A stretch of DNA of 64,000 bases from Marsupella aquatica. Taxonomy: Eukaryota; Plantae; Marchantiophyta. The translations under genes were made by a program, and so were the position numbers. The first letter of the stretch is position 1, and the number at the start of each line of letters is the position of its first letter. The notes beneath the pieces are model-generated. The model was not told the DNA's origin, ran no database searches, and saw nothing but the letters and a program-made list of their open reading frames with translations. Location: contig OZ316899.1 in NCBI GenBank assembly GCA_973895155.1, positions 9,112,287-9,176,286 on the forward strand. The letters are read 5' to 3'. This document shows positions 12,601 through 61,667 of the stretch, piece by piece.

Positions 12601-13261
12601 TTAAAAATTATGAATTACAAAAGTAGACGTTTGGGGAGTGCCTGGCGCTAGCAATGGAAGAGAAGAATTTAATACATTTTATTATCAATGTAACGTAAAC
12701 CTATCATAAACGGGATAAAAAATACATGTATTGTGATAACAGCGTCAGGCATTGGTAAAAGCTAAGCAGTAAATATGCATAATTATTGGACGATTATGAT
12801 TCGGAGCTCTGTGATTTGTCGGTCAAGATTGCTTTGTCATCTACATACTTGCTCCTACAAACGTCATCTACATTAATAAGGATTTATGACAAACTTTTTG
12901 TCAACTCCTCTCCGTAGCCGGAGACCTTTGTTTTCCCAACAAAGAGTCCTCTGATTATCCTCCTTTCTTGCAGCGTTCTCAGCATAAGAGGGCAAAACAA
13001 ATGGTTTCTTGGGTGTACCAATTTCAAAACAAGCTACTTTTCTTCTGAGTTGGAAGCACTTTCTGGTATTCCATTTGGACCTGGTTGAGAACACAAGTCC
13101 ATCCACCGATTGTATGAATGAATAACACAAACGCATGAAGGAGCTAGAAAGGAGAAAGAAGCTTACAAGTTTTAGAACATTACTCAGAAGAGTCATCGCT
13201 GTCACTCTGGCCAGCGGATTGTTCCTGACCCTTCCCTGAGTTGTCCCACCCTCATCTTTGT

Positions 13262-13921
13262 CTACTGTCCCACCACTTGACTCATTGTCAGAGTCAAAAT
13301 TAAGTATAGACCGGAGCTTTCCCTCCTTTTCTTTTCGGGTGGTTGAATTGGGGGAGGCAAAGTTTTGATTTCCTTTGGAGAGAATAGATCTAAGAACACC
13401 TTGGAACCAGTTTCAACAAAATCTTTCCTATTCTCCACTCCAATTACAAACCTCCCAGAATAGTCTCCGGCTACAAAAGAGCTACCCGACCCCACTGTCC
13501 AATCCATGAAAATATCCCTAGGCCAAGTGATGAGCTCTATCACAGATTGCATGAATCCAACCGACAAACGGGCATTCCCAGCAAATTCCATCTCAGGTGT
13601 TGGATCGATTTTGAGAGAGGAAGTCCAATTAAATTAGTTATGGAGGAACCTTTGGTGATAGAGAGAGGTCTAAACCTCGAGTCTTTTGGTACCTTCCCTT
13701 TCTCAGACACTCGACAAAAGACGTCCAGCCTGAGCATGAAGATCTGCAATATAAACCAAGAATGATATGTCATTGGATGCATTCATACACATTCTTGAAA
13801 CTCAAAACTAGATGTCACGATTTGAAATTTACCTGTTGGTCAATCTTTGGCACGTACATTGGAATTGACATGACAACATTGTGTGTCAAGATGCAATGAA
13901 ACTTCTTTGATTCCTGACAAG
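13262..13921 (-). pseudogene. Beta-class N6-adenine/N4-cytosine DNA methyltransferase-like gene, 3' part
   Basis: FMQSVIELITWPRDIFMDWTVGSGSSFVAGDYSGRFVIGVE resembles the SAM-binding motif X/I-II block (T.pGD.VlDpF.GSGt...a...gR..iGiE). There is a putative GT-AG intron at about 13744-13833, and frameshifts. Confidence 0.65.
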
Positions 13922-16900
13922 TGTGATGCCTAGCCAGGAATCATTAAGCCAGTTTAAATAGTAAAATCAGGAGTGTACCCTAGGAAACACCTTAGTATAG
14001 TAACAAAAATAGGGAAATATAAACAATTAAGGGTGACTATGGAACCCGAGCCGAGGCCGAAAGTAAGGACGCCGGGGGAGGGAACACAATTAGGGTTAGG
14101 GTGCGCTAAGTATCGGCGGCTATGGGTAACCAACGGGAAGGAAGACCAGCCAAGGGGGGGGGGTAAGGACCAAGCGCAAGGAATGGCGGCTCATTTGCAA
14201 ACACGAGCCAAGCGGACGACCACGGGAGGCCAACTACTGTCCGCTGCTCAGGCAAGCACTCGGCGTGGAAGTAGATACCGACAATCAACTCAAGAAGGGT
14301 ATGAGGAACGTCAATCAAGCTGCTCATTTTTGGGGATGCCTGTTAGAACGAGCAACTGAGTACATTGGGACCTACGAGGACGAAGAATCAGAGAGAGTGG
14401 CTCGAGAACGGCAAGAGCTTGCTCGGCTATGGGAGCTACAGAAGTCTGCTTTCTTAGGAGGAGAACTCATTACGGCTGAATTCTTGTGGACGCCTACTGC
14501 CGACAAACTGGACGATCTTCTGTTTTGTGAGAACAGAATAGTCGGCATCCGGGAGGCCATCAACCGCGCAACAACATACACTGGGAGTTGAAGGGTAGCA
14601 CGGAGGGGTGGACGAAGGCAACCGTGCTAGGAGAAACATCCACGGCAGCCGCTATGAAGAGGAAAGGGAACAACAACAAAGAAGCCACCCCTGCGAAAAG
14701 AACGAGGTCGGCGGCACCCAAGAAACCAGTAGAGTAGGGAAGCAGGAGGCAGGCAGAAGCCAAAGAGGAGGAGGTCGACCCCATCAATGCCGTTCCAACA
14801 AGAGATGACACCTGGAAAGGCTGGGCGGCGACCCTCCCCGAGGAGGTGCAATTACACTTTGCAGGGGAGGAGGATGCATGCTTTACGGCTATGCAGACTC
14901 AAAAATACCAAGGTTTCATGGTCGGATCCGGCTTGGAAGCCTTTGTAAAGTTACCATGGCTAAAGCCGGAGGTGTTGGATTCAGACTTACTAGAATTCGT
15001 GGGATCATGGGAGCCCGAGACCAATTCCACAAGGGTGTATGGGAAGGATTTCTATCTCACTCCCCGGGTGATTGCCGAAGTTTTTGGCTTGCCAATGGGC
15101 AATAAGACCAAAGTAGATACCAGGAAGACCTTGCTAGACAGGGAGTTCCGGTTGTTTCCAGGGCCATCAACAAAGAATGGCTTCTTCCGAAACACCTGCA
15201 TCAACCCGCACATAGGAGGAATGATTGATTTCTTGCGGGTAACCATGCATTGTAACTTGCCGAGGGCACAAGTCTATCTGGCGAAGAGGCTAGACCCAAG
15301 CCAAGACTACAATAGGTACCTCCTCACCCAACTAAAGAAGATCTTGAAGGAGGAACAGCTGGTGATCGGCATGGGAAGCGTTCCCGGCTTGGTTATCATA
15401 TGCCGCTGTTGTGCCGGTATGCCCGAAGTCAGATATTTACCCCAGATACTGCCCCTGCAGGCAAGAGCACCAGAGGAGGTTCCGGAACCGAGGCCGGCAA
15501 TAGAGAAACCGACCCAGCCCAATAGTCCTACAATCGAGCAGGTGTTTAGGCCGAGGAAGGAGGACTTGCCGATGTAGCAACCAGGCATGCAGAATCTGCT
15601 GAAATTGCTGGAGAAGGAAAGGAGAACGAAACGGCAATGGGACCGGTACAGAATACTGCTGTCGAAGTCGGCCTTAGCCAACTTACCAGGGAAAACCCCT
15701 TTATCGGGGTCAAGGAGAGAAGGAGGCCGGAACACGAGCCGGGAGTCCGAATGTATGTAGGAGCTTCAAGTCCCGAAGCCGAGGAAAAGCAGCCCAAAGC
15801 TCCTAGTCGCGACAGGGAGAAGATGAGATCAACGTGGAAGCCGGAGGAACAAGGACCCATGATCTGTGAGGCCGTGTTCACGGCAAGACCAGGACAGCAA
15901 CGGGGGGAGCCGGGAGTCCAAGCCGAGGAGGAGGCGATAGAAGGCTACGACAATGATGACTCCGGCTACGGGTTGGACCATCATGTTCCAGGAATAAGGA
16001 CCTGTGGCAGGTTCATCCCCACTCTTTCAAGAGTAGTTCAAGGGGACCCGACCCAGCAGAGCAGCCCCGAGTCTCCCCCACCAGATGTCGCTCCCCCGAG
16101 CTTTGACGACATAAAATAGACGGCACAAGAGTTTCAAGAACGACTCAGGGAGGAAGAAGAGGCAGCCCTGGCTAGGGAGAAGGATTTACCAGGAGGAGAA
16201 TGGCCAAAGGACATCAGGCGGCTTGCAAAAAAACGAAGCAGCCCGCGAGCCACAATAGAAGAAATTTGCAAGGCGGCTTGGGAACAAAGGCTGCGATGGA
16301 TGATGCCGATGACTTCTACTCACTCCACCTATGCTAAAGAATGAGCCATGGAGTACGGGGAGATGTGTGGGGAACTTGCGCTTGACATCTTTGGGGAGGA
16401 GTTGGAGCAAGGACCTTTTTTCCAGAGGGAAATGTTGGAGAAGCGCCAATTAGAAGGAGCGGTGGCTTTGGAGAGAAGCGAGAAGGACGAGGTCATTCGT
16501 TGGCTTAGGGTAAGGGAAGCCAAGGTAGAATACCTAAAGGCGGCCAAGAAAGCCCAAGATGAGTTGCGGATTAAGCGGCATGAGCTCAACATCATGCAGG
16601 GGCAATTGGATACCGGGCAGTCTGATAATCAGATTATCAAGGATAAAGTGACTCGGATCAAAGGTGAGCTGGCCGATTCGATCAAGAAAAAGGAGAAGTG
16701 GAAGCGAGAGCTGAGAGACGCAGAGGAGGCCCACATAGCAGCCAACAATCGGGCCATGGCGGAAACTCAGAGAAGGGAAAGGGCGCTGAAGGGGGAACTC
16801 GAGGATATCCGTGGAGCCCTTGAGCAGAAGGAGGCCGAGTTAGGGAAATCCTATCAGGCGATTATCGTGCTGCGGCAGGAGCTCGCATCCATGACGGCCA

Positions 16901-17183
16901 ACTTCAAGGCCGACCTCCGCGAGAAAGACAACCAGCTCGACCAGACTTATGCCAAGATGAATAAAATGGAGTCTGAGGTCGTTACAGAGCTTGACAAGGA
17001 GCTGAGAGCAACCCAGGAGGAGAGAGCTACCTTAAAGGAGGAATTGGAGGAAGCCCAGAAGGAGCGGGAGGAGGAACGCAAGGACCTGGATGAATTGCAA
17101 GAGGAGTTGGAAGAAAGCACGCGGAAGATGGAGAACTCACAGCGGCGAGCCAACAACCAAACGAAGCGGTTGAAGAAACAGGC

Positions 17184-17778
17184 TATCGTGCGCATACATA
17201 TCGCTACACAACATACATCGCTTGTCACATACATCCAGACATAGTCACACTGCCACATCACAAACACAAGAGAATGGAATACAAGTGGAACTCATGTCCA
17301 CACATGTCCAAAACCCACAATAATCTCCACACAATCGGCACCACGATCCCGGTCAACAATACCGCACCGATCCGATCACACACGTATGTCAAGCCAACGC
17401 ACCTTGCACTACTCAAGGAAATCCACGTTACACAAGCGGAGCTCACAGCCACCATAGCCACTCAAGCTCCTCTCTCTCCAAGGCTCAACATTGAAAGATG
17501 ATCTTTCAATGCCTCACAAGTGAGAAGTACCCTCTCACACAAACCTGACGGAACCTTATTGGCTCATATAACACACATACCAAACATACGGATCTAGATA
17601 GTATGATATACTCTAACACTACCTAGAATGGTGTGACAGCTGTCGTGCGCATACATATCGCTACACAACATACATCGCTTGTCACATACATCCAGACATA
17701 GTCACACTGCCACATCACAAACACAAGAGAATGGAATACAAGTGGAACTCATGTCCACACATGTCCAAAACTCACAAT
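17184..17778 (-). repeat. 3' terminal repeat block a-GC-b-a (sense orientation) with palindromic junction GACAGCTGTC
   Basis: The 138-bp a repeat occurs twice. The 317-bp b repeat matches 26561-26876. The junction is at 17635-17644 and a polypurine tract (minus AGGGGGGCG) is at 17779-17787. Confidence 0.92.
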
Positions 17779-17951
17779 CGCCCCCCTAGCTGGGAGTAAG
17801 GTCCCCTAACTCTAGCTAGCCATGAGTTCTATAAGGTTGATATACACCTTTTTAGGTGTGAAGATCAGGAGGCCGGGTGCAAGTGAGCCCCATCGATCAC
17901 CTACCTGCAATCCATATCTGCCAAGAGAACACAAATGATAACTAGTCGGCT

Positions 17952-19265
17952 TCACCGACACTGAGGACACAACCATGATCCACTAGGAATCACCTGCAAT
18001 GGTGGTGTCAAACATGACATGTGCCATCCTCTAGAACACTTATCACAAATCAACATAGTAGTTGCTCCCTGAGCAGATCCACACAACATACATTTCAAGC
18101 CAGCACGAACATGTGCCAAGCTTGGATCTACTGTACCATCAATGTTGGGAAGGTGACATGGTGCACAGTTGCGCACATGATCCTTCCAAACCATACCATC
18201 GCGTCCCTCCAACATCAGGACACCAGAAGGCAACACTTCACGCACACGTAAGATTGTCCGGCCTGCGGTCACATCAAGTGTCGTGGGTGCTGTCTGTTGC
18301 AAATAAATATAATCACCAGGATGAAATCGCCAAATGCTTGCACGGTAACCTCCTCCATGAATAGTGGCATACCTCAAAGTATCACGATGTTGGGCAATGG
18401 CAAGGTTGTCGAAAGCCATGGGCATCACTCGCTGAAATACCCGTGCTCTCTCTGAACACACCTTGATCCAAACATCAGGATCATCCAAGTTCACAACTGA
18501 TGCAGCATCACAACGAATAGCTGCTGGCAAATCTGGCTCTCTACCATAGAGCAAAAAGTAAGGTGAGAAGGATGCAAGTGATGCTTGCCGACTAAAACGG
18601 TAGCCCATAGCTAACCAAGATAGCTGGAGATCCCAATCTCCCAGATGACCAACCTGCAAGCCATACTTACGTAATCCTCTCTTCACAGTTTGCACAACTC
18701 TCTCAGCTAATCCATCTGCCTCAGGATGATCATGAGAGGTAGTACGATGATCAATCAGAGCTTGTTCACAAAAACTCTCAAACTCTCCACGAAACTCAGT
18801 TCCCTGATCAGTCAACACCTCAGCTGGTGCTCCAAAATGACTGAGTACACGATCCAAAAATGTAGCAGCAACTTCTCCACTGGCTTTATCTGGCAACGCC
18901 ACTAGCTCAATCCACTTGGAGAAGTGCTCCACCATGACCAAAACATACCGATTATGACGTTGGGTAAGAGGTAATGGACCAGCAAAATCCAAACTCCAAC
19001 GATATCTCAAACCCATGATCGGCAACGGGTGCAACTGGGGAGTGGGAGCATTAAATGATGCTCTCACTCTATCACATACCACACACTTAGCTATCAACTG
19101 CTGGACATGAGTGTGCATACCATGCCACCAATACTGTGTCTGCAGCAAGCTGTAAGTGCGCTTTACACCAAAGTGACCCAACTTCTCGTGCGCATGTCGC
19201 ACCAAATGTACTCTCTGTGATGGTTTTGGGACCACCAACACTCTACCATCATGCAATACTCTCAA
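17952..19265 (-). CDS. DDE integrase with C-terminal PHD finger
   Basis: HHCC (HEKLGHFG..CVVC), SLDFAGP, LTDQGTEF and AERVVQ, followed by the C4HC3 finger CMLC..ICDKCSRGWHMSC..WLCPQC. Confidence 0.93.
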   Translation of the reverse strand: MRVLHDGRVLVVPKPSQRVHLVRHAHEKLGHFGVKRTYSLLQTQYWWHGMHTHVQQLIAKCVVCDRVRASFNAPTPQLHPLPIMGLRYRWSLDFAGPLPLTQRHNRYVLVMVEHFSKWIELVALPDKASGEVAATFLDRVLSHFGAPAEVLTDQGTEFRGEFESFCEQALIDHRTTSHDHPEADGLAERVVQTVKRGLRKYGLQVGHLGDWDLQLSWLAMGYRFSRQASLASFSPYFLLYGREPDLPAAIRCDAASVVNLDDPDVWIKVCSERARVFQRVMPMAFDNLAIAQHRDTLRYATIHGGGYRASIWRFHPGDYIYLQQTAPTTLDVTAGRTILRVREVLPSGVLMLEGRDGMVWKDHVRNCAPCHLPNIDGTVDPSLAHVRAGLKCMLCGSAQGATTMLICDKCSRGWHMSCLTPPLQVIPSGSWLCPQCR

Positions 19266-19329
19266 AAGATGGTTTCCCTCCCATCGAAACCTCTTGGCTC
19301 TCTATAGAACCCTGTCACGTTCCTTGGCA

Positions 19330-21030
19330 TCAACACTGGCAACAATAGAACCACTGCGCAGATATTCCAACACTCACATCATTGTGAATATCTTGCTGTC
19401 CAGTAGTTACCTCACTAACATCCACATCTGAAGACTCATCATCCACTCCATCCAATGAGGTAGAGTCCACAGATCCACTGTATGCTGACACCCAACAAAG
19501 AAAGGCAGATGCATGCCATCCTGGCACCATCTCCTTATCTGACTCATCATGCCATCTGGTTCCAGTCTCATCTTGCTGACTGGTACATGGATTGCGGCTT
19601 AATCCATCTGCATCCAAGTTCACTTTTCCAGGCCTATGCACCACCTGGAAATCATACTCCTGTAACAACAATGCCCATCGTGCAAGTTTCCCTGTAAGCT
19701 TGTCAGACTCCATTAACCACTTAAGAGGCTGATGATCAGTGATCAAGGTGAAGGGATTACCAAACAAGTAGCAACAAAAGTGTGCAACAGCCCACACTGC
19801 TGCCAAACACTCTCCCTCATAAGAGCTATACTTAGCCTCTGCTGAATTGTTTGATCTACTGGCATAAGCCACAACAAACTCATTCCCCTCATCATCCTTT
19901 TGAGTCAGCACTGCTCCAAGTCCTACTCCACTCCAATCAGTGTGTAGCTGAAATGGTCTGCCTGAAATGGGTCTTCTCAAAATAGGGGATGATGCCAACC
20001 TTTGCTTCAACTCCTGAAAGGCATGCTCCTGGTCATTACCCCAAATCCATTCCTGATCCAACTTAGTGAGTATGGTCAAAGGTTTAGCAAGCTGGCTAAA
20101 TCGTTTAACATACCTCCTGTAGTAGCTCGCCAATCCCAAGAATGCACGAACTCTACTCACATCAGTAGGACAAGGAATCTGTGTAATGGCCTCCACTTTA
20201 GTCTGTTGTACACCCAATCCCCTTGGGTATATAGTGTGGCCCAAATACTCAATCTGGTCTTGGAAGAACTTACACTTGCCAGGATGGAGCTTCAACCCAT
20301 GTGCTCTCAATCTCTCCAACACAATCTGCAAGTGCTGTTGATGTTCTTCCACAGTAGAAGAATAGACCAAAATATCATCAATACAACATCTGACAAAATC
20401 CAAACCTGCAAGGATTCGATCCATGACTCTCTGGAACTCAGCTGGTGCATTCTTCAACCCAAATGGTAAGAATAACCACTGATACAAACGATCTTTGCCA
20501 TAAGAATCAATCCCCCAGAATGCTGTCTTGGACCTGTCAGCATGCCTAATTGGAAGCTGATGGTACCCTGCCCTCAGATCCAATGAACTGAAAACCTTTG
20601 CATGCCCCACAGCATCAAAGATCTCCTCAGGTGTGGGCATCGCATATCGATCAAATTTTGTCTGGCGATTAATAGGTCTGTAATCACCACACATGCGCCT
20701 ATCTGTGTAATTGCCATGCACATCCTTCTTGGCTGGCATCACTGTGGCAGATGCATACTCCCCATATGAAATCTCCACCAATCCAGCCTCCAACAAATCT
20801 TGAGTTTTGCTTTGAATCAGAGCTCTCTCCATGTCACTATAATGGTATGGTCTACGAAAGATTGGCGCATCACTAGCCAATTCAATCTGAATACCAGGGC
20901 CCTTCAGTGTCCCCAAATCCTTCATGCTGAATGCAAAACAATTCCAATAACTCTTCAGGAATCGATGCATGCGACGTCTCTCCTCCCCTGTTAACTTAGG
21001 GCCAAACTGTGGTTCCCAACTCTCCACCAA
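19330..21030 (-). CDS. Reverse transcriptase and RNase H
   Basis: LDLRAGYHQL, LPFGLKNAPAEFQ and CIDD (YIDD mutated); RNase H motifs LHTDWS, EGECLAAVWAV and TDHQPLKWL. Confidence 0.95.
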   Translation of the reverse strand: MVESWEPQFGPKLTGEERRRMHRFLKSYWNCFAFSMKDLGTLKGPGIQIELASDAPIFRRPYHYSDMERALIQSKTQDLLEAGLVEISYGEYASATVMPAKKDVHGNYTDRRMCGDYRPINRQTKFDRYAMPTPEEIFDAVGHAKVFSSLDLRAGYHQLPIRHADRSKTAFWGIDSYGKDRLYQWLFLPFGLKNAPAEFQRVMDRILAGLDFVRCCIDDILVYSSTVEEHQQHLQIVLERLRAHGLKLHPGKCKFFQDQIEYLGHTIYPRGLGVQQTKVEAITQIPCPTDVSRVRAFLGLASYYRRYVKRFSQLAKPLTILTKLDQEWIWGNDQEHAFQELKQRLASSPILRRPISGRPFQLHTDWSGVGLGAVLTQKDDEGNEFVVAYASRSNNSAEAKYSSYEGECLAAVWAVAHFCCYLFGNPFTLITDHQPLKWLMESDKLTGKLARWALLLQEYDFQVVHRPGKVNLDADGLSRNPCTSQQDETGTRWHDESDKEMVPGWHASAFLCWVSAYSGSVDSTSLDGVDDESSDVDVSEVTTGQQDIHNDVSVGISAQWFYCCQC

Positions 21031-21249
21031 ATCCCTAATATCTCTTTGTAGGGTAGAAGAGATAGCCGATGATTGCTATTTAGCAGTAGATTGAGCAGTC
21101 CCTTCCTGCTCAACAATCTGTCCAGCCTTGGCCAATCCTGCCATAGGTCCATGGACTGTCTGCTCGCCCCCAACTGTGGTCAATATTGCCTCAATGGACC
21201 GCAAGCTCACCAAGGGACAATTAGTAATTCCAGCAGAGCGCATCCGCAA

Positions 21250-22240
21250 CTATTCAGCTACTCCCAAGCTGATAATCCAAGTCAAACAATTCAGGTCCAT
21301 TGCTTGACCAAGAACCTGGCGCCGCAAACCCTCTGACACAGAGGCAACTGCAGTGGTGCCAGTAAAAAATCCCATAGCACGCTCTCTCTCATCAGCAGTA
21401 GGCTCCACTAATTGCTGGAGAGCTGTGTCCCACACAAGTCCAGGGCCACCTGCTCTGAATGCATATGAAGTAGAGTGGCTTACAAGAGTGGGTAATGCAC
21501 AACATGGGTGCCCAACTGCATTGACCATTGCCAATGGAGGTCTATCAGGTTGGGTCACACCCTGTGCCCGACGCCCTGGATCCAAAATATCATCCACCAC
21601 TAAGGCTGGTGAGCGTGGAATGCTGTCAAATGCGCGCTTCAGCACCTCACATGGGATCAAATTAGTCCACCACAAGCGTGGATGATGTGCACAAGAACCC
21701 ACACGTGCAACATCCAATAACATAGCAAGTCCAATCCAAGACCTCACCTGGTGAACACTGGCAACAATCCGACTACGATCATCACCTAACAATGGCACAT
21801 TCTCCAAAATGTATGCTGGAGACTGTGTCTGATGTAGCTGGAGATGACGCAGCACCCGTAACATCTCTCAAAACAATGCAGAGCGTGGATCATGAAGTCC
21901 ATGCCCAATGCCCTAGATTGGCCCTGACATGGCCAACCAGCAATCACCAAATCAATGGGGCCAACACGATGTAGATGATCCGCCCCCAACAATGAAATAT
22001 CAACAAGTAGTGCATGCTGATAACCATGAACAGCATCCACTGGCAGCAACTGTGGATATCTATCCACCAACATAGCCACATGTCGCAATGAGACCCTCCG
22101 TGCTGTCTCATCTGTCTCCACATACAAATAACGACGCACAAGAATTCCTGCCTGAAGAACAGCAGCCAATCCAGTACTAATCCCACCAAAAAGATCCAAC
22201 AAACAAATACCCTCCGGTGGATACTGCCAAGCAATAGGAG
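21250..22240 (-). pseudogene. C5-cytosine DNA methyltransferase domain (DNMT3/DRM-like) within pol, one frameshift
   Basis: Motifs in canonical order: I LLDLFGG, II YLYVETD, IV IDLVIAGWPCQG, VI YILENVP, VIII RLWWTN, IX ERERAMGF, X LGQAMDLN. Confidence 0.92.
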
Positions 22241-22569
22241 TGGTATCCAATGGTGAAAGAGTCACAAGTCCATCTGCAAGAGACTGCTCTGCTCCTGGCT
22301 GTGGTGTAAAAGCATGACGCCATGCATCATGTACTAATCGTGCTGCTGCCTGTGCAGTGCCCCACACTGGTGGCACAACACTGCCAACAGGTAATCCTCG
22401 CATGATGTGCTCCTCATGAGACTCCTCCAATGGTGGAACATCGGCTGCATGCGCATTACCCTCAATCAAATCATCAGGTCCAGCAATTACACCACTGAAT
22501 GCTGCCAAAGACAATGGTGTGGATTTAGGGCCTCCCACAGGTCCACTAAATCTCACTGGCAATTTGCTC

Positions 22570-23000
22570 AATCGAGCATCTCCGGACTGCCAATCAAGTC
22601 TATATGACACTAATTCCTCCCAAAAATCAAGAATAAATCCCATGGGGTAGAGCACTGTACATCCCACCAACACATCATATGACTCTGCCTTAGTCAGAAT
22701 AGCTCACGCCTGTATCTGTGAGCTATCTGTGGTATGACCTTCCTGAATCCTCAAATCAAGTGGTCTCCTGGTGATATGTTGTGTAGGTGTAGGTCCCCCC
22801 AATGAAGTCTGAATGGGAAAGGGACAATCCTCCAAATCCTTTGGACGCAATCCCAACCCACGTATGGCAGACTTCCCCAACATCAAGGGTTGAGCACCAG
22901 TATCCAGTAACACTCTCTCTGGCTGGTATACTGCTCCAGAAGACCCAACTAATCGGAAGATGCCACTCCGATTATCCAATGACACAACACTAGGTTTAAA
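22570..23000 (-). pseudogene. Aspartic protease of the split-repeat element
   Basis: RVLLDTGAQPLMLG and the downstream LVG..VLYPMGF.LDFW. Confidence 0.8.
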
Positions 23001-23351
23001 CCTAGTCCTCTCAAATGTAGGGTGTGCTGGTAAATCCACCAACCTTGCTGCTGCTGCATGCCATGTCTCACTAGTAGCAGTAGGTGGTATGGTCTTCATT
23101 GCTTCAACACTGCAAGCTGCTTCTGCATGGGAAGCAACAACTGGAGTGTCCTCATAGAGTGTAGCTGCCAATCTGAACACTTTTGCAGGACCAACTCCCA
23201 AGTTCAGCATGTCTATCGCTGAAAATAATGGGGTGCGTACTATGGCAGTAGCCACCCCCAGCAGGGTACTTGTCATCCCTACTGTATCACTACCGGATTC
23301 TGCCAACTTACCCACGCCAGGGTTTGTCCGAACCGGGTTCATAGAGGCAGT

Positions 23352-25051
23352 CTAAACTGTCTCTAACAATGTAAAAGACTGAGGAAGCTTTGTCTGCCAA
23401 CGTGCATCCCCCCTCTGTGGATCTAGCTCCACTACTGCTCCTCGGGGCTCAAGAGCTTTGGCTGTCCCACGTGTCAAAGCTGCTGATGCATCAATATGTG
23501 CAGTGCTACACATGAATCCCATGGTGGCAAGATCTCCATCAGCTCCATAAGATGTGGAAGGACCATGGGATGTGGAAGGTCCATAGGATGTAGATGCCCC
23601 ATCACCAGAAGTAGGTCTCACCTGGGAACTAGCCATAGCAGCTAGCTGTTGCTCCAATTGAGCAATCTTAGCATCCTTTGGATCTATGGTTACAGTAGGG
23701 GCAGCGTCACCTCCCTGTCTCCCTGCATGTGGCATGCCACGACCACGTCCACCACCTCTACCTCCTCCTCCTCTTCCCTGATCATGTGTACGGGATCCTC
23801 CCCTTCGTAACTCAGGGTGGAGTGAGAAACACCTATCCTTGGTGTGTCCAGGAGCTCCACAGTGATCACACTGTCGCTAATCAGGTGCTGATGCTCCCCC
23901 TGATCCTCTATGATCTGGGCAATATCTCTGTGCATGATCCCCACCACAGGTCCAACATCCTGACTGCTGTCCAGCATAAGAGGGCACAGGTCTCTGGCTG
24001 GTAGACTCTCGTGCAGTAGGCTTCTCCCTCTGGCTCTTCTGTGCAATAGGTTGTGGTGTAGATGTAGATGCAGCCTTTGGTGCTTCCTTGGCAAATCCAG
24101 AAGTCACCACCTTCTCATTCACCATATTGAGCTCAATGCGCTCAAAAAGGGTGAAACAACTGCTAATGTGGGATTTGCATCCCTAAGCAGAGTGACATCT
24201 CTCACTCTGCGTCGCAATTATCTGTCCAGAATTGCATACCAAAACTGGACTGCTTGAGCCTCTGTTACTCCCTTGGTGACAATGATCAATCTGCGCATAT
24301 GAGTGTATGCCTCACGTAGACTCTCTCCAGTCTTGCGCTGGAACTCCTGGAGACCCTTCAACTTATCAGTTCTCACACCCTGATAGTTCTGCTTCAGTAC
24401 CTCAAAGAATTCCACCACAGGATTAAATGCTGGCGCAACTCCAGTTCCTGTCACAATCACACCGGCAGGAGTAGCGGTGGATGCTGCTGGAGTGCTGCTG
24501 GTGGATGGTGTGCCACTCTGGCTAGTGCTGCTAGAAGAGGCAGCAACTGTGGCAATGGGTTGGGTAGCCGCACTAGTGCCATAGGTGATGGATACGTAAT
24601 TAGGTGACCAATGCTGCCTCCATGCCTCAATCTCAACCAAATGAGCCTTTCAAAACTCATGGTAGTCATCCATGGGTGGCCCTTCCAAATGCTGAAATAA
24701 TCCCTTCCATGCCATGAAAGGGGTAAACAACATGGCGTTACGCAATGTCTGCATATCGCACCACGTATCAAACTCCTGGATGAAGTCATCCAGATCAATT
24801 GTGCCAACTGCACCAGAGTATCGTCGTGGGCCCTTTGTAGCCCCGTACATCTCGTCCATATCCCACAACAAAGGTGCAACCACCTGATGACGAGGAGAAC
24901 TGGTCACTGAGTCCTCGTCGGAATCATTGTCTAAAGCTGCACTGCTGACTGCTACCAATGCCGCTGGCCGAAACTGTGCCCCACTCCGAGTGAAACCGGT
25001 CCGTCGTCCATCGGGTAATCCAACAGCACCAGAAGAATCTGTGGTGACCAA
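23352..25051 (-). pseudogene. gag: gag with two CCHC zinc knuckles, frameshifted
   Basis: YSGAVGTIDLDDFIQEFDTW, FQRKTGESLREAY, CWTCGGDHAQRYC and CDHCGAPGHTKDRC. Confidence 0.8.
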
Positions 25052-26560
25052 CCCTAACCTAATCTATGTGCTAACCCTAAGGGCAATCTATCCCTGTCAG
25101 CACCACAAGCACTCACCATGGTGTGTTGGGCATCACTCCAACATCACCAGGAGAGAAATACATAGCACAACTAGAATGTCCGGTTGCAAACCCGGATCAC
25201 TCCTATAGAATCAAGCGCCCACGCCAAACTAACATGGCGCATAAACAGGAAGCATGTGTGGAGAGGATCCAACAACAAGAAGAGGATTTACCACAACTCT
25301 CCACACCAATCAATCAGAAATACATGTAAATAATGTGCATATAGTTCAATGTAGGGCCTTCATAATAGGCCTCAAGAATCCCGCGTCAAATATTCAAGAA
25401 TCCATCGCAAACTAGCTAAAACAGAGTATCTAGATGAATTCAAAAGTGCATAAAACCCCTAGGGCCTCATTCCTTGGACATCAAATGTGGAAGGAAGCAT
25501 GTACAATGCACCACATAGGAACTTGCTAGTTAAGCGCATGAGGGGAGGAATAGCTTTGGGATGGGTGACCTCTCACTTGTCAGTATGCACCAAATCTGCC
25601 ACTCCAAAATGGCAGCACTTGCAATTCTCCTCACGTACCAGCAAGCTGGCTTGCTGGCCCGCCCGCTCCTGCTTCGCCCTCACGCCCCTCGTCCCGAGTT
25701 GCCTCGAAGCCTCGAAACGCCGAGATGAGCCAAAGAGTGAGACCTTCACGCCCACAACGCTTTGCTATGCCGGAACCAAGTCCAAGTCCAGATTTTGCAC
25801 CATTTGGACTTATGGCCCCTGTTTCCCTTCGCAGAACTGCACGGTAGCGGCGTACACTCCGTCGCAACAGTAATCCGCGGATGCTGCCACCGCATCGACG
25901 TACTATCTCACAAAAATGCAGATCATCAGTTGAGATCTCGCAACATTCGGGTCTCAATCCCTCAGTTTCCTTCAAAGAAACACGTTGCAAAATGCAACTC
26001 AACTTCGCGCCAACCAACACTTAACCGAGTGCAAAATCAGCAATATATGCAGCTGCGGACAGTCGCTTTCTTCACACCAAACTTGGTCCGCGCAGATCAG
26101 CATACGGAAGAACTAGACAACAATACGGCCGTGCCTCGCAGATCTGCATACGGACAAACTAGATAGCAATACGGCCGCGCACTTTGCAGATCTGCAACCG
26201 ATGACACCATCAGAATGCCGTTTCCTTCACAAAAATAGCCACCGCTTCACAAGATAGAACGCTGCCGCACCCGATCTGCTTGTAGCCAACCGATACAACT
26301 CAAACACGTCGATCTGCAACCAAGATCTGCACATTGTCGACAGATTTGTGCATACAGACTACAGATTCGCCAAACCTCCAACTCCAGATCCGCTCAAGAA
26401 TCAAACTCACAGGATCTCAACTTGGATCCACATGCCGGCGATCCAATCAAACGATACGCTGCACGATCCGAGATACCACAAACCGTTGCCGAACAGAATC
26501 AAACTGAAAATCGAAGCTCTGTCCAACAACAACAGAGTCCAATGCTTGATCTTTCAATGT

Positions 26561-26876
26561 AATCTCCACACAATCGGCACCACGATCCCGATCAACAATA
26601 CCGCACCGATCCGATCACACACGTATGTCAAGCCAACGCACCTTGCACTACTCAAGGAATCCACATTACACAAGCGGAGCTCACAGCCACCATAGCCACT
26701 CAAGCTCCTCTCTCTCCAAGGCTCAACATTGAAAGATGACCTTTTAATGCCTCACAAGTGAGAAGTACCCTCTCACACAAACCTGACGAAACCTTATCGG
26801 CTCATATAGCACACATACCAAACATACGGATCTAGATAGTACGATACACTCTAACACTACCTAGAATGGTGTGACA
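26561..26876 (-). repeat. 5' terminal repeat b of the split-repeat element
   Basis: Near-identical to 17322-17638. Begins TGTCAC on the minus strand. Confidence 0.92.
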
Positions 26877-27439
26877 AGGCCGCAGTATTTAAGTGCTTGG
26901 CTTCCTCAGGTCCAACTCCAATTGGGGCAACCAAGTTACCAGGAGTAGTACTGGCCGAAGGACAAGCCGAGACACTTGCACCGGTGCCGGAGGTAAGTGG
27001 CAAGGGGAAGGGGCCAACTGCCAAACCAAAGAAGAACAAGAAGCAAAAACCTTCTGGGTCAGGGAGTAATACGGCTCCTCAAGCCGTCGTGACCAAGGAG
27101 GTAAACCCAACACCAACCTCAGGCAGGGTCACGGCAAAGGATCCAACTGCCCTAGAAGGCGGGGATGGCAAAGCCAAGGCCAAGATACTCGGTGATGAAG
27201 CCAGGGTACCAGATCCACCACTAGTACATGTCGGGGAGGCCGTGGCCAATGCTGAGGCCAAAGCCGAGGGTGGACCCAGTCAGGCCAATGGAGAGTTGAC
27301 TCGGTCCGGAGCAAGTAATCTGTCAAAGGACGGACCTATGGTAGTGGCTGCGGAGGAAGTGTTGGGGGTGTCCATTGAGGACCAGACACCGCTGCCATGA
27401 CGGTGGTGGAGGGCCGCTCCTTTTAAGGAGGGCGGACGT

Positions 27440-30400
27440 TGTCGTGCCAAAAGATTTTGGCTCAGGAATGGCTTTTATAGGGGATGATGGGCGAGGCTTC
27501 CCGGTTGGGTTGCGTGCATGCTGACTCAGAGGGGCTGCTTGGTTGGATGGATTGAGGTTTGGTGATTGGGTGACTCATTGTCACCAGGTTTGGTGTTTGG
27601 GTGAGTCACCAGGCTTGGAGTTTGGATGAGCCTCGCTGCTGGCAACTGGCTCAGGCTGGATGGTTGGGTTTCCGATGCTACTTAAGACGCAGGCTACCTT
27701 CTTGGATTGGGTGAATGACAGGAACAAGAAGTTGAAGGGGCCGCAAGAGCTCCTAAGGGAGTTCAAGAGAAGGGTGTCTCAGTTACCAAAGCGGGATGTG
27801 GGAATCATCGAGTTGCAGCGCTCGACGCTCTTCTTGAGGGCAGCCAATGAGGACCTTCAAGAGGAGCTTGAGAATGCGATGGAGCTGCTGGAACCTTTGA
27901 GAGTTACCTTGTCTAACGACTGGAACCAAGTTGAGAAAGCGGTGTCGAAAGTGAGCAATCGACACCGGCGGCAAGAGCTAGACAAGGAGGCTACCACTCT
28001 CGACCTAAGGCCGCCGGAACCAATATTGAGGAAAGGGAAGCGAGAACCAGCGAAGGATGAGATCAAACCATCGGTGGATGATCTCGCAAAAATGATGCAG
28101 AACCTGAAGATCTTGGCGGCACATGCGGTCGAGAATCCAAAACCAAGGGTTGCGAGTGCTCCCGAGAGGAAGCGAGAGATGCAGAGTTGGCCATGCATGT
28201 GGTGCGACAGCAAAGAGCATGACAAACGGGAGTGCCTAGACCTGAGGGAAGTTGCGGATAAAGGGCTGATCAAGTTCGTCGGTGAAGTTGGTCAGAAAAA
28301 GATATCGTTTGCCAATACTGAGGAGCCGATTCCATTCAACTCCAACAAGGGAGTCATGAAGGCTTTGGCTGAGAAGCGAGCTAAGAAGCGAGCTAGGAAG
28401 CGAGTCGAAGAGGCGTCCTCTTTGCACCTGGAAGCGAATGTTTACAATGTGGAGTTGGATGGCCCCGTGACGGAAACGGGCAAGTTTTACAAGCGGTTGG
28501 CGGATCTGGTGCAAGAGAGATCCGAATGGAGTGACCCGGTGCTGACCAATGCGATAACGGTTGAGGTTGGGGCTAGTTGGGATGCCTCGGTCGAGTCAAA
28601 AAGGAAGAAAACCGACAAGGATGACACTCCGTCTCAATCAAGGGAATGAGAGAGGCGGGATACTCGAGACAAGGAAAGGAGGGTTAGGTTTGAAGAAGAG
28701 GAAATGAGCCAGAAAGAGCCGGAGAAAGGGAAACCGATCAGGAAGAACCCGGGCTGGGTGCTTGGCAGGGACGTGGACCAGGTCATGTACCCGGAGGTTG
28801 TAGTTGAGAAGTTCTGGAGCCAACAGGCTCAAGGGTTTACCAACGCCGAGTTCTTTGGCAGTATGAGGCGGGAGATCCAGGAAGCGATCTTGGAGAGATC
28901 CAAGAGGAAACGGATTTACAAAGAGGGCCCTCACACCTTGATGGGGGAGGCTGGCGAGACGGAAATTGGGAGTTTCCAAACTTACACTGCTGGGGTGTCC
29001 ATGGGTTCAGGTAGTAAGCTTGCTGGCCCCAAAGAGTCAGACTTGGGGGAACCGAAGAGGGTCAAGTCCCTTGAAGAGGAGCTCATGAACTTGGACGATG
29101 AGTTCTTCGATGCGGAAGAGGAGCTCATGGGAACCGGAAGCAAAGCTGAGTCTGTGGAAAACAGGGACCCGACCGAAGGGGGAGAACAAGAAAGCATTAC
29201 CGTGCAGTCGAGGACCATTCATGTCATGGGCTCAATGAAAGGAAACGGTTATGCTTACCGAGATAGATACTGGGCTCGAGCAAGTCTGGAGAGCGAGTGC
29301 CAGTTGGAAGGAATGGAAGGCAAGTTGCGGGCGCTCATTGATACTGGCTCGGAGATCAACTTGATGGATCCAAAGGTGTTTCAAAAGGGGAATTGGCCAG
29401 TGGACAATGAGTTGCTTTGGAGTGTGAACTCGGTGAGTTCAATGAAGGACTATCTTTGGGGCGGATGTCCGAATGTGATGGTGAAGTTCGGGAATGTCAA
29501 GCAGGCTTGTAACATTTTTGTTCATGAGCACTTGTCATTTCCGGTGATACTGGGCATGCCGTTCATCACTGAATGGAGGATGGAGACAAAGGTTCTGGAT
29601 GATACTACCTTCATGGTGAAGGTTTGGAGCAAAGATGGGAAAGAGGTGGTTCAATTTCTGGCTGTTTTACCTGGAAACAAGAGGAATAGGAAAGGGTTGA
29701 GGACTGAGAGTGCCGACTCTAGTCCAGGTCCGGAAAATGACTTGGCACTTTGCTGAAAAGAGTGGATCGGCAGAGTGCTCATTCCTTAGCTCCTTGTGAA
29801 GGGAAAACACAATGGATAATGGACAGGAAGAGCCACTCGAATGTGCGGAGTCTAACTTGGGAAGGGACAAGCTGGAGAAGGAGTTGGAAAGGCAGTACTC
29901 GTCTATGGTCGTGCTTGTATACTCAAGTACCAAATACAAGACGGTCGACAAGAAGGTGAGGCCGGCGGCGATACCTTTGCCGGACGATGCGATGGAGGTT
30001 ATGGATCGAGCGAGATTGGAACCAAGGCTAAGGCCAACTGATCAGATAGGGCATAAGTTTACTCAAGAGAGTTTGGCGAAGATGAAGATTGGTTTGGATG
30101 GGTTACTTATGGAGGTGGAGCAAGTGGCATTTCAAAAAATGATAATGGAGCATGGCAAGGCATTCTCGTTTTTGATTGAGGAGATTGGTTGTGGGGATCC
30201 AAGTAAGGTGACACCGATGGTCACCTTTACTGTCCCTCATGTTCCGTGGGATCTGAAACCGATTTTGGTTCCGCGGGCTTTAGCTCCAAAGCTTGCAAAA
30301 CTGCTTAAGGAGAAGCTGAGTGCTAGGATTCTCGAGAGGTCTGATGCTCCCTACTCGAACAGATGGTTTACAGTGAGAAAGAAGAATGGAAGCTTGAGGT

Positions 30401-33400
30401 TCATTCAGGATATGCAACCTCCGAACAAGGTGACCATCAGGAATGTGGGAGTTGGGCCACTCGTGGATGAGTTTGCGGAGGAGTTCGCTGGGAGGGCGAT
30501 CTACTCCATGGGTGATTTGTTTTTGGGTTACGACCAGTTCCAGTTGGCGCAAGAGAGCTAAGACATTATGACTATGAGGACCCCGTTGGGCCTCTTGAGG
30601 ATGTGCACTTTTCCTCAAGGGGCGATGAACTCAGTTGCGCACATGAAAAATGCGATGAGTAAAATCTTGGAGCCGTTCATTCCGGAAAAAGCGAGACCGT
30701 TCATTGATGATGTCCCAATAAAGGGTTGCTTGGCTGAAGGGAAGGATGAGACCTTGAGGAGTGATGGGATCCGGCAGTTTGTGTGGAATCACATTGCGGA
30801 TGTTAAGGCGGTTCTCGAGAAGCTGATTGATGTGGGAGTCACTCTTTCGAGGGAGAAGTATGAATTTGGGATGCTAGAGGTGAAAGTCGTTGGGCCAATG
30901 TGCGGATCCTATGGAAGGAAGCCGAACATGGATAAGGTGAGAGCTATTAGCGAGATGAAGGATTGCGAATCGGTGCCGGAAGTTTGGAGGTTTCTGGGTG
31001 CTTGTGTCTTTTACAAGATCTGGATCCCTCACTTCTCGCACCTGGCGGACCCGCTCTATGAGCTGTTGAGGAAAAAGGTTAAGTGGAGATGGCTACCCGA
31101 GCATAGTGAAGCAATGGCTAAGCTTAAGAGCGCTCTCATGAGCCGGCCAGTTCTCCGAGCTGCAGACTATGAGAGCGGGCGACCACTGATCATGACTATT
31201 GATGTGAGTCCGTTCGCAGCCGGGTGGGCTGTTGGGCAAGATGACAAGAATGGGGAAAGGTATGCGATCAGATTTGGGGCAAAAAAATTTACAGAAAGGC
31301 AAAGGAGATATGCCCAAGTTAATAGGGAGCTTTGGGGTGCCAAGGTGGCACTCCATCAGGAGAGAAACTATTTGATTGGGGCGCCGGAGGTGGTTGAGAC
31401 TGATTGCCAATCACTGCTGGGGATGATTGCGAATTGTGACACGCCTGACATAGCAATGCTCAGGTGGATTGCTTTCATTCGGATTTTCAACCCTGAGCTA
31501 AGTCACATTGCAGGAAAGGATAATCCGGTTGCCGACATGCTGTCAAGGGCGAGATTCAGAAATGAGGTAGCAACGAGAGTTGGCAAGGTGACCAGAACCA
31601 AAAGTGTTGGAAGTCTAGAGTTCAAGGAAGAACTCTACTCGGGAGAGTTGCTGGATATCAGGCGTTACATTAGCACTTTGGAGAAGCAACCAGAGTGGAG
31701 TTACCAGGAGTTCATCAAGATCCGGAAGAGATCTTACAAGTTCCTATTGAGGGAGGGCTACTTGTGGCGAAGGCATAAGGACCCAAGTCAGTTGTTGCAA
31801 AGGGTTGTGGATACTAAGGATGAGAAAGACCGAATTCTCAAAGAGAGCCATGATGCTAACATGGCTGGGCACAAAGGGGTGCATTCAACTTACGAGAGGG
31901 TCGGAAGCTGTACTGGTGGCCAGGTTTATACTTGGCCGTTCGAGACTATGTCAAGACTTGCGAGATTTGCCAATTTTACTCGAGGATCCGACATAGGGAT
32001 GGATTGGTTCCGACTTACCCCGTGGCTCTACACTTTCAATGGGCTATTGATGTGGTGTACAATGCAGAGAGAGAGCAATGGGGCGAGATACTTGGTTTTG
32101 TCTTCTTATGTGGAAGGGAGAGCGTTGGTTTCGAACACTACTGCTGCCGTTTGCCAGTTCATACTTGAGGATATCATTGCAAGGCATTGGTGCTTTACAA
32201 GGATCAGAGCTGATAGGGGGGAGCTCAGCTCCAAGGAAGCGCAAGAGTTTTTCGACCAATACCGCATCAAACTGAAGCTGACTTTGAGTTACAATCCGGA
32301 AGGCAATGGGAAATCTGAAAGGGGGCACATCCAGATTGTGGGCGCTTTGGCTAAGGCTTGTGATGGGGACTTGGGCAGGTGGTCGAGTCTCCTTCCACTT
32401 GCTCTGTTAGCGGATCAGATGACTTGTAGCTCAGTGACCGGATACGTTCCGGCTGAGCTACTTACTGGGCACTTGCCGATGATGCCACTCAAGGAAGATG
32501 TTTGCAGCTGGCGACTGATTGGATGGAAAGATGAAGTTTTGAGAGAGGAGTTGCCGGCTTGAAGGATCGAACACTTCAACTTGTTACCCGCAAAGATTGA
32601 GGTGGCTCGGAAGCAATTGAAGATGGCGAGGTTAAGGAACAAGGGCAGGTTCGATAGGACTCATCGGTTGAGGCCTGTCTTGGTTAAGGAAGGGGATTGG
32701 GTTTTGGTTTACGAAAGTAAGTTGGACGAGCAACACTTGATCCAAAACAAGTTTGCTCGGAGGTGGCAAGGTCCGTATGTGGTGGTTGCTGTTCATGCGA
32801 ATGCAACCTACACTATTCGGGAGTTGGATGGAACGGTTCACCAAGTACCTTACGCAGGGAAAAGGGTGAACATCTTCAAGAGGAGGACCGAGAAGGGAAT
32901 GGACTCAAGTTCCGACTTGAATGAATTTGAAGACGAGGTACTGGTCCAGGCGCATCCGTTGGACTTGAGTTTCAAAAGTGGCTTGACTGGTTCTAATTTG
33001 GATGAGTTGGACTTCAGGTTTCTAGAAAGTGGAGTGCCTAAGGCCGAGTCTGAAGGCTTTGGGTTTGAGTTTCTTGAGGAGGAAGTGGTCCAAGCGCATG
33101 GCTCGAGTTCGGACTCAGACTTAGAGGAAATCTGATTGATTGGAGCAGACTGGAGGCTGCTCAGGTTTACTGGGGGAGGATGTCGTGCGGAAAGATTTTG
33201 GCTCAGGAATGACTTTTATAGGGGATGATGGGCGAGGCTTCCTGGTTGGGTTGCGTGCATGCTGACTTGGAGGGGCTGCTTGGTTGGATGGATTGAGGTT
33301 TGGTGATTGGGTGACTCGTCGTCACCAGGTTTGGTGTTTGGGTGAGTCACCAGGCTTGGAGTTTGGATGAGCCTCGCTGCTGGCAGCTGGCTCAGGCTGG

Positions 33401-34031
33401 ATGGTTGGGTTTTCGATGCTACTTAAGACTTGAGCCTCGGCTCATTGAGGTTGGCGGTTGTCTATTGAGATCTGTTGAGTTGCGTTCTGTGAGTTCCGCT
33501 CTGTTCTGTGGAACTTGACTGTTGTGCGGCGGTTTTGGAGTTCTGAGTGAGTTTTTGATCCAGGTGGGGAGTTTTTGATCCATGCGGGGAATTTTTCGAG
33601 TCTGGAGTCTCGTTGATCCAGGCGGGGATTTCTCAAGTTTGGAGTCTTGTCAATCCAGGCGAGGATTTCTCAAGTTTGGAGCCTCGTTGGTCCAGGCCCA
33701 AGTTCCATGCGAGCTGTTTTAGACTAGTGGAGTAGCTAGTCGAGTTTTTGGTTTTGTGAGCTAAGGAGGATAGTTTTTCCGTCAAATTTTGAGTAGTTAG
33801 TCACTCGAGGAGTTCTACTCGACCAAGTTAGAGGTAGCGGCCCGCCGTAGGGCCAGCTACCAGACTCTTGCGGGCAAGCTTCCTCGAGGGCACCTATTGT
33901 AACCTTTGTGAGAAAAGTAAAAAATATAAAGGAGTGAGAGTTTGCTCCGAAAAGTGCTTGTCACCTGTCCCAATCGCAACCAGAAATGCGTAGTTTGCCT
34001 GAGGAGCCCCTAACTTTAAGTCCTCGCAACA
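27440..34031 (+). mobile_element. Ty3/Gypsy LTR retrotransposon of fungal/Chara (Ylt1-like) type, with the 5' LTR/gag start deleted
   Basis: TSD ACGT (27436-27439 and 34032-34035), 5' LTR remnant 27440-27688, polypurine tract GGGGGAGGA at 33172-33180 and 3' LTR 33181-34031. Confidence 0.9.
27689..33135 (+). pseudogene. gag-pol (CCHC, protease, RT, RNase H, integrase), disrupted
   Basis: CMWCDSKEHDKREC, ALIDTGSEINLM, YKTVDKKVRP, FPQGAMNSVA, FIDDVPIKG, IDVSPFAAGW, IRADRGEL and RWQGPYVV. Confidence 0.9.
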
Positions 34032-61662: not shown

Positions 61663-61667
61663 GACTT

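Follow-up and report, generated by a model that had tools for sequence, protein, structure and literature searches.

A 64,000-nucleotide stretch of the liverwort Marsupella aquatica (GenBank assembly GCA_973895155.1, contig OZ316899.1, positions 9,112,287 to 9,176,286 of the forward strand; hereafter the window, with coordinates counted from its first letter) contains a 9693-bp Ty3/Gypsy retroelement at 17184-26876, on the minus strand, whose repeats are split. While Ty3/Gypsy elements are expected to carry an identical long terminal repeat (LTR) at each end, the 5′ end of this element consists of a segment b only, and its 3′ end of a-GC-b-a, where a and b denote two repeated segments. The same layout is kept from chlorophytes to liverworts. 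In our preferred reading, which we regard as probable, the integrase of this lineage uses ends that are out of register with those produced by reverse transcription, and a permuted cDNA is integrated. To the fuller proposition we give an even chance: an ancient green-plant Gypsy lineage, active in Chlamydomonas and probably in Volvox, would obligatorily integrate permuted cDNA, whereby a CAGCTG-centred palindrome is opened in the 5′ LTR only while the tips of the cDNA are linked to each other. The window copy is decayed and belongs to an old Ty3/Gypsy lineage of the Viridiplantae, whose integrase has a PHD finger and many of whose members have a DNMT3-like domain.

Structure of the insertion in the window

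Repeat finding and self-BLAST showed that 17184-26876, read on the minus strand, has the order b - gag/PR/DNMT/RT/RH/IN-PHD - G-run - a - GC - b - a, in which PR is the protease, DNMT a cytosine methyltransferase-like region, RT the reverse transcriptase, RH the RNase H and IN the integrase. The 5′ b (26560-26876, minus strand, 317 nt) starts with TGTCAC, and the 3′ b (17321-17638, minus strand, 318 nt) includes a second copy of the self-primer described below (17488-17499). The two b copies (26876-26560 and 17638-17321) are identical at 308 of 318 positions and the two a copies (17778-17641 and 17321-17184) at 136 of 138; among substitutions, the differences between the repeat copies are transitions only. 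Whereas the internal a (17641-17778, minus strand, 138 nt) ends with ...CACGACA, the terminal a (17184-17321, minus strand, 138 nt) ends with ...CACGATA directly at the target site, as a result of a CA to TA transition. Between the internal a and the 3′ b lies the palindromic att GACA-GC-TGTC (17635-17644, without strand assignment) with its 2-nt spacer at 17639-17640, and the polypurine or G-run AGGGGGGCG (17779-17787, minus strand), the putative plus-strand primer site, is situated directly 5′ of the internal a. No further copies of a or b were found elsewhere in the window by self-BLAST.

The element is flanked by a 4-bp target-site duplication (TSD), GCCT (5′ copy at 26877-26880, 3′ copy at 17180-17183, both on the minus strand), and lies within a host repeat. 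In a paralogous copy of this host repeat, uninterrupted at 57040-60781, both flanks meet at a single GCCT (60204-60207, minus strand), where the repeat families D4 and D18 overlap by 4 bp; this empty target site also defines the exact ends of the insertion. Since the empty site has one GCCT and the filled site two, 17184-26876 entered as a single piece with a 4-bp TSD, which rules out assembly error and stepwise nesting. The repeat map and the empty site thereby bear out the layout given in the original prediction, which had been made from the letters of the window alone. With numerous breaks in its reading frame and a mutated terminal CA, the window copy is an inactive relic.

Distribution of the layout among relatives

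The best matches of the window RT come from the liverworts Calypogeia fissa and Marchantia polymorpha (74-76% identity), followed by Klebsormidium, Closterium and Volvox, with the Klebsormidium RT being 42-48% identical to that of the window. In the Calypogeia copy (L002), the 5′ b occupies 3782-4121, the G-run abuts the internal a (13171-13269) and the terminal a lies at 13611-13709. Its att reads ...CGCACGACA GC TGTCACAC, followed by the 3′ b and then the terminal a, and its TSD is GTCA. In addition, when metagenome contigs were scanned with an alignment of integrases, 80 loci were obtained, in two groups of about 70-77% and about 50% identity. These loci carry no organism labels; their own a and b segments were collected into a library for annotation, and duplicates of the same insertion were removed.

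The order IN - a - NN - b - a, where NN is a 2-nt spacer, was observed in 26 distinct insertions, comprising 24 metagenome loci, the window copy and Calypogeia L002. Together with the copies of Klebsormidium nitens (L083), Volvox reticuliferus (L085) and Chlamydomonas reinhardtii (L086), this long form amounts to 29 distinct insertions. In a further 19 of the 48 distinct insertions, the integrase is followed by a and then directly by the flank, giving a short form b-int-a, where int is the internal region. Wherever upstream sequence is present, the 5′ end is b alone, and paired LTRs of the type b-a or a-NN-b, one at either end, occur in none of the relatives examined. Solo copies of b-a are rare in the flanks and too few to inform.

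TSDs of 4 bp were identified in 11 loci altogether, the window included. They include GCCT in the window, GTCA in Calypogeia, AAGG in L010, CATA in L033, ATGT in L055, ATAA in L077, AGTC in Volvox and TCCG in Chlamydomonas for the long form, and TACA, CCAA and GTAT for the short form. The layout is thus shared by independent insertions with different TSDs, 29 in number, as had been proposed for a check, and the window copy is not a one-off.

The algal copies extend this picture. Klebsormidium L083 shows the G-run, a, GTGACA-GC-TGTCAT, b and a in succession, while its 5′ b was not found within 13 kb. Chlamydomonas L086 has the complete order b-int-a-GC-b-a with the att GTGACA-GC-TGTCAC. Because its b pair, and both the a pair and the b pair of Volvox L085, are 100% identical, both repeat pairs must have been made in one cycle. 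The Volvox copy contains the PHD-integrase, and no DNMT was found in it, so the layout goes with the PHD-integrase lineage and not with the methyltransferase. The segment a is about 30-80 nt long in the chlorophyte copies (51 nt in Volvox), compared with 138 nt in the window.

Several loci are less complete. Marchantia L001 is degenerate, with a-b-a at its 3′ end and an unrecognisable 5′ b, and assembly gaps break up Haematococcus L087 and Tetrabaena L088. In Closterium L084, the integrase is followed by tandem repeats; with no clear att and no PHD finger, this locus probably belongs to another lineage and was left unparsed. The otherwise very young Volvox L085 carries a 1420-nt duplication in pol (8484-9903 and 11203-12622; 99.8% identity), and hence two RNase H regions. 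In L051/L054 (2475-2549, 4693-4767), the 3′ b is cut to 75 nt between two full a copies, corresponding to an internal deletion of b.

Priming sites and the LTR defined by reverse transcription

Immediately downstream of the 5′ b lies a sequence that pairs perfectly with a 10-18 nt stretch of mid-b, and both sides covary through six sequence versions. In the window, the candidate self-primer ATCTTTCAATGT (26726-26737, minus strand), which lies in the 5′ b at the predicted 5′ end of the RNA, forms a perfect 12-nt complement of the primer binding site (PBS) ACATTGAAAGAT (26549-26560, minus strand). The corresponding pairs of mid-b and post-b stretches are AGTTCTCTAAGT and ACTTAGAGAACT in Calypogeia, AGTTCTTTGAGT and ACTCAAAGAACT in metagenome group 1, AGTTTTTCTAGAATT and AATTCTAGAAAAACT in metagenome group 2, and GTCACTTGGCT and AGCCAAGTGAC in Volvox, and Chlamydomonas L086 has an 18-nt self-primer of the same kind. 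In a shuffle test of each match of at least 10 nt that was tested, 0 of 300 shuffles reached the observed pairing length. A PBS of the tRNA type was considered and rejected, as the post-b sequence does not begin with TGG and covaries with mid-b instead.

In several relatives, TATA-like motifs are situated about 30 nt upstream of the mid-b stretch. Pairing and motif position together fit the signature of Tf1-type self-priming, with the mid-b stretch at the predicted transcription start site (TSS). The first half of the 5′ b would then be promoter or U3 and the second half R-U5, as we infer from the position of the self-primer and the TATA-like motifs of the relatives; TSS and poly(A) sites are predictions throughout, the TSS being placed at the self-primer (26737 in the ancestral active form) and the poly(A) site within the 3′ b. 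Self-priming of this kind is known in Tf1/Sushi and plant Tcn1 elements (PMC6317226).

On the other side, a G-rich purine run, TAGGGGGGCG, TCTGGGGGGGG or GCTGGGGGGGGG, always abuts a upstream, although a itself is unalignable between lineages. Because the PBS abuts b and the G-run abuts a, minus-strand synthesis begins where b ends, and plus-strand synthesis where a begins. Reverse transcription thus produces an LTR of the form a-NN-b, which encloses the ends that the integrase uses. The proposal of an a-GC-b LTR for the window copy is hence upheld by the constant positions of the G-run and of the covarying self-primer and PBS.

Integration ends and the att palindrome

In all loci with an a-NN-b junction, the internal a ends with ...ACA, b begins with TGT..., and the spacer is always 2 nt long (GC in 12, AC in 10, AT in 2, GT in 2, AA in 1 and TC in 1). 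This pattern fits the decay of an ancestral CAGCTG by transitions. The palindrome noted inside the LTR of the window (GACA-GC-TGTC, 17644-17635) is thus one instance of a conserved ...ACA-NN-TGT... site. The integrated ends, in contrast, are flush TG...CA ends without a spacer. Nicks placed after each CA, 2 bp apart, would give recessed CA-3′OH ends with 2-nt 5′ overhangs, which is the normal product of 3′ processing by integrase.

One metagenome locus (L027, contig Ga0209611_10009954, 3242-3878) serves as a natural control for what defines an integration end. It consists of a-GC-b-PBS, after which roughly the first 180 nt of b appear in reverse complement, and its right end ...GGTCATGACA, cut after ...GACA, directly meets the flank; its 5′ end is off the contig. 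From its sequence, it looks like plus-strand strong-stop DNA that had folded back on the self-primer site, been extended and been cut at the palindromic att. Since this fold-back copy was cut after ...GACA, the att core, and not the physical tip of the cDNA, defines the integration end. Retroviral integrases, namely those of prototype foamy virus (PFV) and human immunodeficiency virus 1 (HIV-1), can likewise cut palindromic LTR-LTR junctions internally (PMC1905944, PMC1180852). In Chlamydomonas L086 (19638-19766 and 20286-20334, chromosome 9), two extra att-like palindromes, CATGACAGCTGTCATATG and CGTGACACCTGTCACACG, lie upstream of the real att.

The joint between b and a

In loci with a known 5′ b and PBS, the joint between the 3′ b and the terminal a consists of the exact U5 end, 0-5 bases of the PBS start, and a. 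The PBS-derived bases are A, AA, AAT or AATTC within a single subfamily, and the a at the joint starts at the tail of the G-run or up to 3 nt inside this tail. In L061, 5 nt of a were lost and a G was gained, while the Volvox joint has a 6-nt filler, AAACAA, and lacks 3 nt. In the window, the joint lies at 17321/17320 with one shared, ambiguous A, in line with the end-to-end join proposed originally. By analogy with retroviral circle junctions, the joint looks like joined cDNA tips.

Proposed mechanism

From the observed layout, TSDs, conservation of att, positions of PBS and G-run and variability of the joint, we infer the following order of events and the candidates for the tip-joining activity. 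The RNA would start in the middle of the 5′ b, and its first 10-18 bases would fold back to pair with the site adjoining the end of b, thereby priming the minus strand, as in Tf1. The plus strand would be primed from the G-run preceding a, and the LTRs of the resulting cDNA would be a-NN-b. The DDE integrase would then ignore the cDNA tips and nick both strands after the CA of ...ACA-NN-TGT... in the 5′ LTR, which would yield a TG... left end (the start of b) and a ...CA right end (the end of a). Joining of the natural cDNA tips, the end of b and the start of a, to each other would give the product b-int-a-NN-b-a, inserted with a 4-bp TSD and with loss of the NN.

The tips may be joined by host end-joining before integration, through a 2-LTR circle, by host end-joining after integration, or by an end-to-end template switch of the RT. 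Three routes to the product can be envisaged. In the first, the integrase would commit to the att of the 5′ LTR, which should become duplex within a few hundred nt after the second strand transfer, while the 3′ LTR would follow only after about 9 kb of plus-strand synthesis; the preference for the 5′-LTR att may thus be kinetic. In the second, the completed plus strand would switch end-to-end onto the 3′ end of the minus strand. In the third, both ends from one att cleavage would be integrated together, and the host would then join the remaining tips. These three routes are inseparable from sequence alone.

The short form b-int-a could result from use of both att sites or from later recombination between the two a copies, and both origins predict TSDs. 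The four youngest copies (window, Calypogeia, Volvox and Chlamydomonas) are all of the long form, and 86 de novo insertions have been reported to be complete 15.4-kb elements (Craig et al. 2022, PMC9940879). Taken together, these two points hint at later recombination, rather than direct integration, as the origin of b-int-a.

Alternative explanations

The alternative closest to the proposed mechanism is that of the original prediction, in which linear cDNA is end-joined by the host into a free 2-LTR circle and the integrase opens either of the two identical internal att sites without bias. Such a circle yields the observed structure exactly, the joint shows the features of end-joining (filler, loss of a few bases and PBS bases in varying number), and cleavage of palindromic circle junctions by integrase is documented for PFV and HIV-1. 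However, an unbiased choice predicts the mirror form b-a-NN-b-int-a in about half of the insertions, and this form was seen in none of the 18 loci with 5′ information, 10 of which carry the long form. If long and mirror form were equally frequent, ten out of ten would have a p of about 0.001. Moreover, the unbiased circle alone does not account for the b-int-a form with its 19 insertions. Either the integrase acts on the 5′-LTR att alone, or the joint arises by a way other than a free symmetric circle. We therefore favour a biased use of att, given the missing mirror form, and consider the unbiased circle unlikely. The internal att and the joined cDNA tips of the original circle model stand, while its symmetric choice of att does not, and the b-int-a form (19 of the 48 distinct insertions) had not been foreseen by it.

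A slightly less probable alternative is that the terminal b-a is templated, with the RNA reading through the 3′ b into the terminal a and DIRS/PAT-like jumps copying the joint from the parent element. This would account for the strict asymmetry, and it would agree with the almost constant joint of the liverwort-like group as well as with a layout that is formally identical to the A1-int-B1-A2-B2 order of PAT/Ngaro elements (PMC8969392). Beyond the terminal a, however, there is only host DNA and no primer site. Furthermore, the presence of 1, 2, 3 or 5 PBS-derived bases within one subfamily and the filler or loss in Volvox and L061 are at odds with a copied joint, and the terminal a begins at the boundary of the G-run, where a genuine plus-strand 5′ end would be expected.

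Split direct repeats are also the hallmark of PAT/Ngaro, which could suggest that the element belongs to the DIRS order, or was mobilised by one of its members, with a tyrosine recombinase integrating the circle. We regard this as highly improbable. Among the 20 open reading frames (ORFs) of at least 90 aa on either strand, none gave a match of the PF00589 type, whereas the DDE integrase is intact with its triad D93/D153/E188, which is invariant in the alignment with relatives. This agrees with the earlier claim of a DDE integrase without a tyrosine recombinase. In addition, TG...CA ends and 4-bp TSDs occur in 11 loci, whereas DIRS elements make no TSD (PMC8969392). Finally, a one-off rearrangement, nested insertion or assembly error of an ordinary paired-LTR Gypsy element, for which it could be said that the window holds a single, decayed copy, is already refuted by the relatives and has a negligible chance of being correct, given the occurrence of the layout in five other genome or metagenome sources and in 29 distinct insertions, the entry of the whole block at once and the lack of paired LTRs in every relative examined.

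Four points weigh against integration of a permuted cDNA as proposed here. Firstly, all inference is drawn from integrated copies, and no cDNA intermediate was observed. Secondly, the strict absence of the mirror form requires the extra assumption of a kinetic or structural preference for the 5′-LTR att. Thirdly, the liverwort-like group has an almost invariant joint (U5 end + AGTTGTGG), which might also reflect inheritance, a precise step or a templated one. Fourthly, the terminal and internal a of Chlamydomonas L086 differ by a 25-nt AT-rich indel and in the first ~15 nt, despite identical b copies, and such a mismatch is not predicted by the simple model.

Relation to known systems

The layout itself has been noticed before. 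The legend of Fig. 4c of de Mendoza et al. 2018 (PMC5890265) describes KnitGypsy-Dnmt3 of Klebsormidium nitens as having the repeat structure of a DIRS element with Gypsy domains, so that the novelty claimed in the original prediction was overstated. The two elements share the Gypsy domain order and the A-coding-B-A-B layout, and probably also a DNMT3-like domain in pol, to which the window copy gives a weak match. They differ in that the window copy is decayed and liverwort-like; the Klebsormidium locus L083 was compared for its repeats. A second case is Gypsy-7a_cRei of Chlamydomonas, whose polyprotein contains RT, RH, PHD and INT, and for which the legend of Fig. 6A mentions 'LTR subparts' and a left LTR missing the final 8 bp of its right counterpart (Craig et al. 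2022, PMC9940879). Judged from this legend rather than from sequence, it probably has the same architecture with a very short a. The C. reinhardtii copy L086 represents a different element from Gypsy-7a_cRei. Neither paper (PMC5890265, PMC9940879) discusses TSDs, an internal att, priming or mechanism, and a literature search for the mechanism of the layout returned only these two figure-legend remarks. The window copy is therefore a new, inactive member of a lineage already noticed, whose mechanism is unexplained in the literature found.

Compared with PAT/Ngaro elements of the DIRS order, the window element has the same A1-internal-B1-A2-B2 split direct repeats, in which the internal B1-A2 corresponds to joined termini. 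PAT/Ngaro elements, however, use a tyrosine recombinase and make no TSD, whereas the window element has a DDE integrase, TG/CA ends and a 4-bp TSD. With Tf1/Sushi and plant Tcn1 it shares a PBS complementary to its own R region instead of to a tRNA (PMC6317226). The likeness is one of priming type, since those elements have ordinary paired LTRs and a chromodomain, in contrast to the PHD finger and split repeats found here. At the 2-LTR junctions of PFV and HIV-1, a palindrome of two CA/TG ends is cut internally by integrase to give integration-competent ends (PMC1180852, PMC1905944), as proposed for the att of the window lineage. The retroviral palindrome, however, arises only on ligation of the LTR tips, in a side pathway, whereas in the window lineage every LTR already contains the palindrome, and it is the ligated tips (b-a) that are left uncut. 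The suggested relation to Troyka proved wrong: although Troyka is likewise an atypical Gypsy-like group, it has CG...CG termini and 3-bp TSDs and occurs only in animals (PMC12440569), in contrast to the TG...CA ends, 4-bp TSD and green-plant host of the window element.

If the inferred integration of a permuted cDNA is correct, the usual substrate of an integrase can be an internal site. In textbook LTR retrotransposons and retroviruses, it is the tips of linear cDNA that are integrated, and the idea from the 1980s that the circle junction serves as the att site was abandoned. The lineage would then be the first natural LTR retroelement with a 'circle-junction-type' att as its normal integration site. 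It would also link the architecture of DDE elements with that of tyrosine-recombinase elements (DIRS/PAT) and illustrate how an element with a DDE integrase can come to have DIRS-like split repeats. In practical terms, LTR-finding software would mis-annotate such split-repeat elements, since it expects paired LTRs. As relatives are young or active in Chlamydomonas and Volvox, the pathway is directly testable in a laboratory alga.

Coding content of the window copy

Pfam searches recovered the Ty3/Gypsy pol order PR - RT - RNase H - DDE integrase on the minus strand, with a weak PR match. All coding features lie on this strand. The gag-like region (two ORF pieces, 24218-25051) has no Pfam match and is assigned by position only; it is collinear with the N-terminal part of a 1339-aa Calypogeia ORF. 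It is followed by a piece of aspartic protease (22704-23342) with a weak match to Asp_protease_2 (E 0.002, below the cut-off). RT and RNase H (19330-21030) match RVT_1 (1.5e-31) and RT_RNaseH (5.9e-36), and the DDE integrase with its C-terminal PHD finger (17952-19265) matches the Pfam families Integrase_H2C2, rve and PHD.

Between protease and RT lies the DNMT3-like cytosine methyltransferase region (21250-22673), which consists of two ORF pieces split by a frameshift. The piece at 21786-22673 weakly matches DNMT3A catalytic domains in the Protein Data Bank (E about 1e-3), and FGG, PCQ and ENV motifs are visible by eye in the window pieces, neither of which gave a match in the Pfam search. 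The intact Calypogeia homologue (the long ORF of L002) matches PF00145 (DNA_methylase) with 30.9 bits, above the cut-off, and the Marchantia polymorpha protein P0007 also carries PF00145.

Neighbouring elements

The host repeat is at least 4 kb long and has three copies in the window, at 14011-17183 + 26877-27439 + 34034-34912, at 57040-61700 and, inverted, at 35527-37913. It is probably a CACTA/EnSpm DNA transposon, since an ORF beside one copy (61594-62565) matches Transposase_21/tnp2 (2e-31). A second Gypsy element (27431-33429), adjacent to the split-repeat element and situated in the same host repeat, has ordinary paired LTRs (27431-27688 and 33172-33429; 258 nt, 95% identity) and an RT-RH-IN ORF at 30568-32562, and thus provides an internal contrast to the split-repeat element. 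An inverted extra copy of its LTR lies at ~2606-3021. A direct repeat pair at 1014-1479 and 8378-8841 (86% identity, 7.36 kb apart) resembles the LTRs of a third, older element. Upstream of the host-repeat copy with the empty site, an ORF at 55700-56521 weakly matches a SET domain (E 3e-4, narrowly missing the Pfam cut-off).

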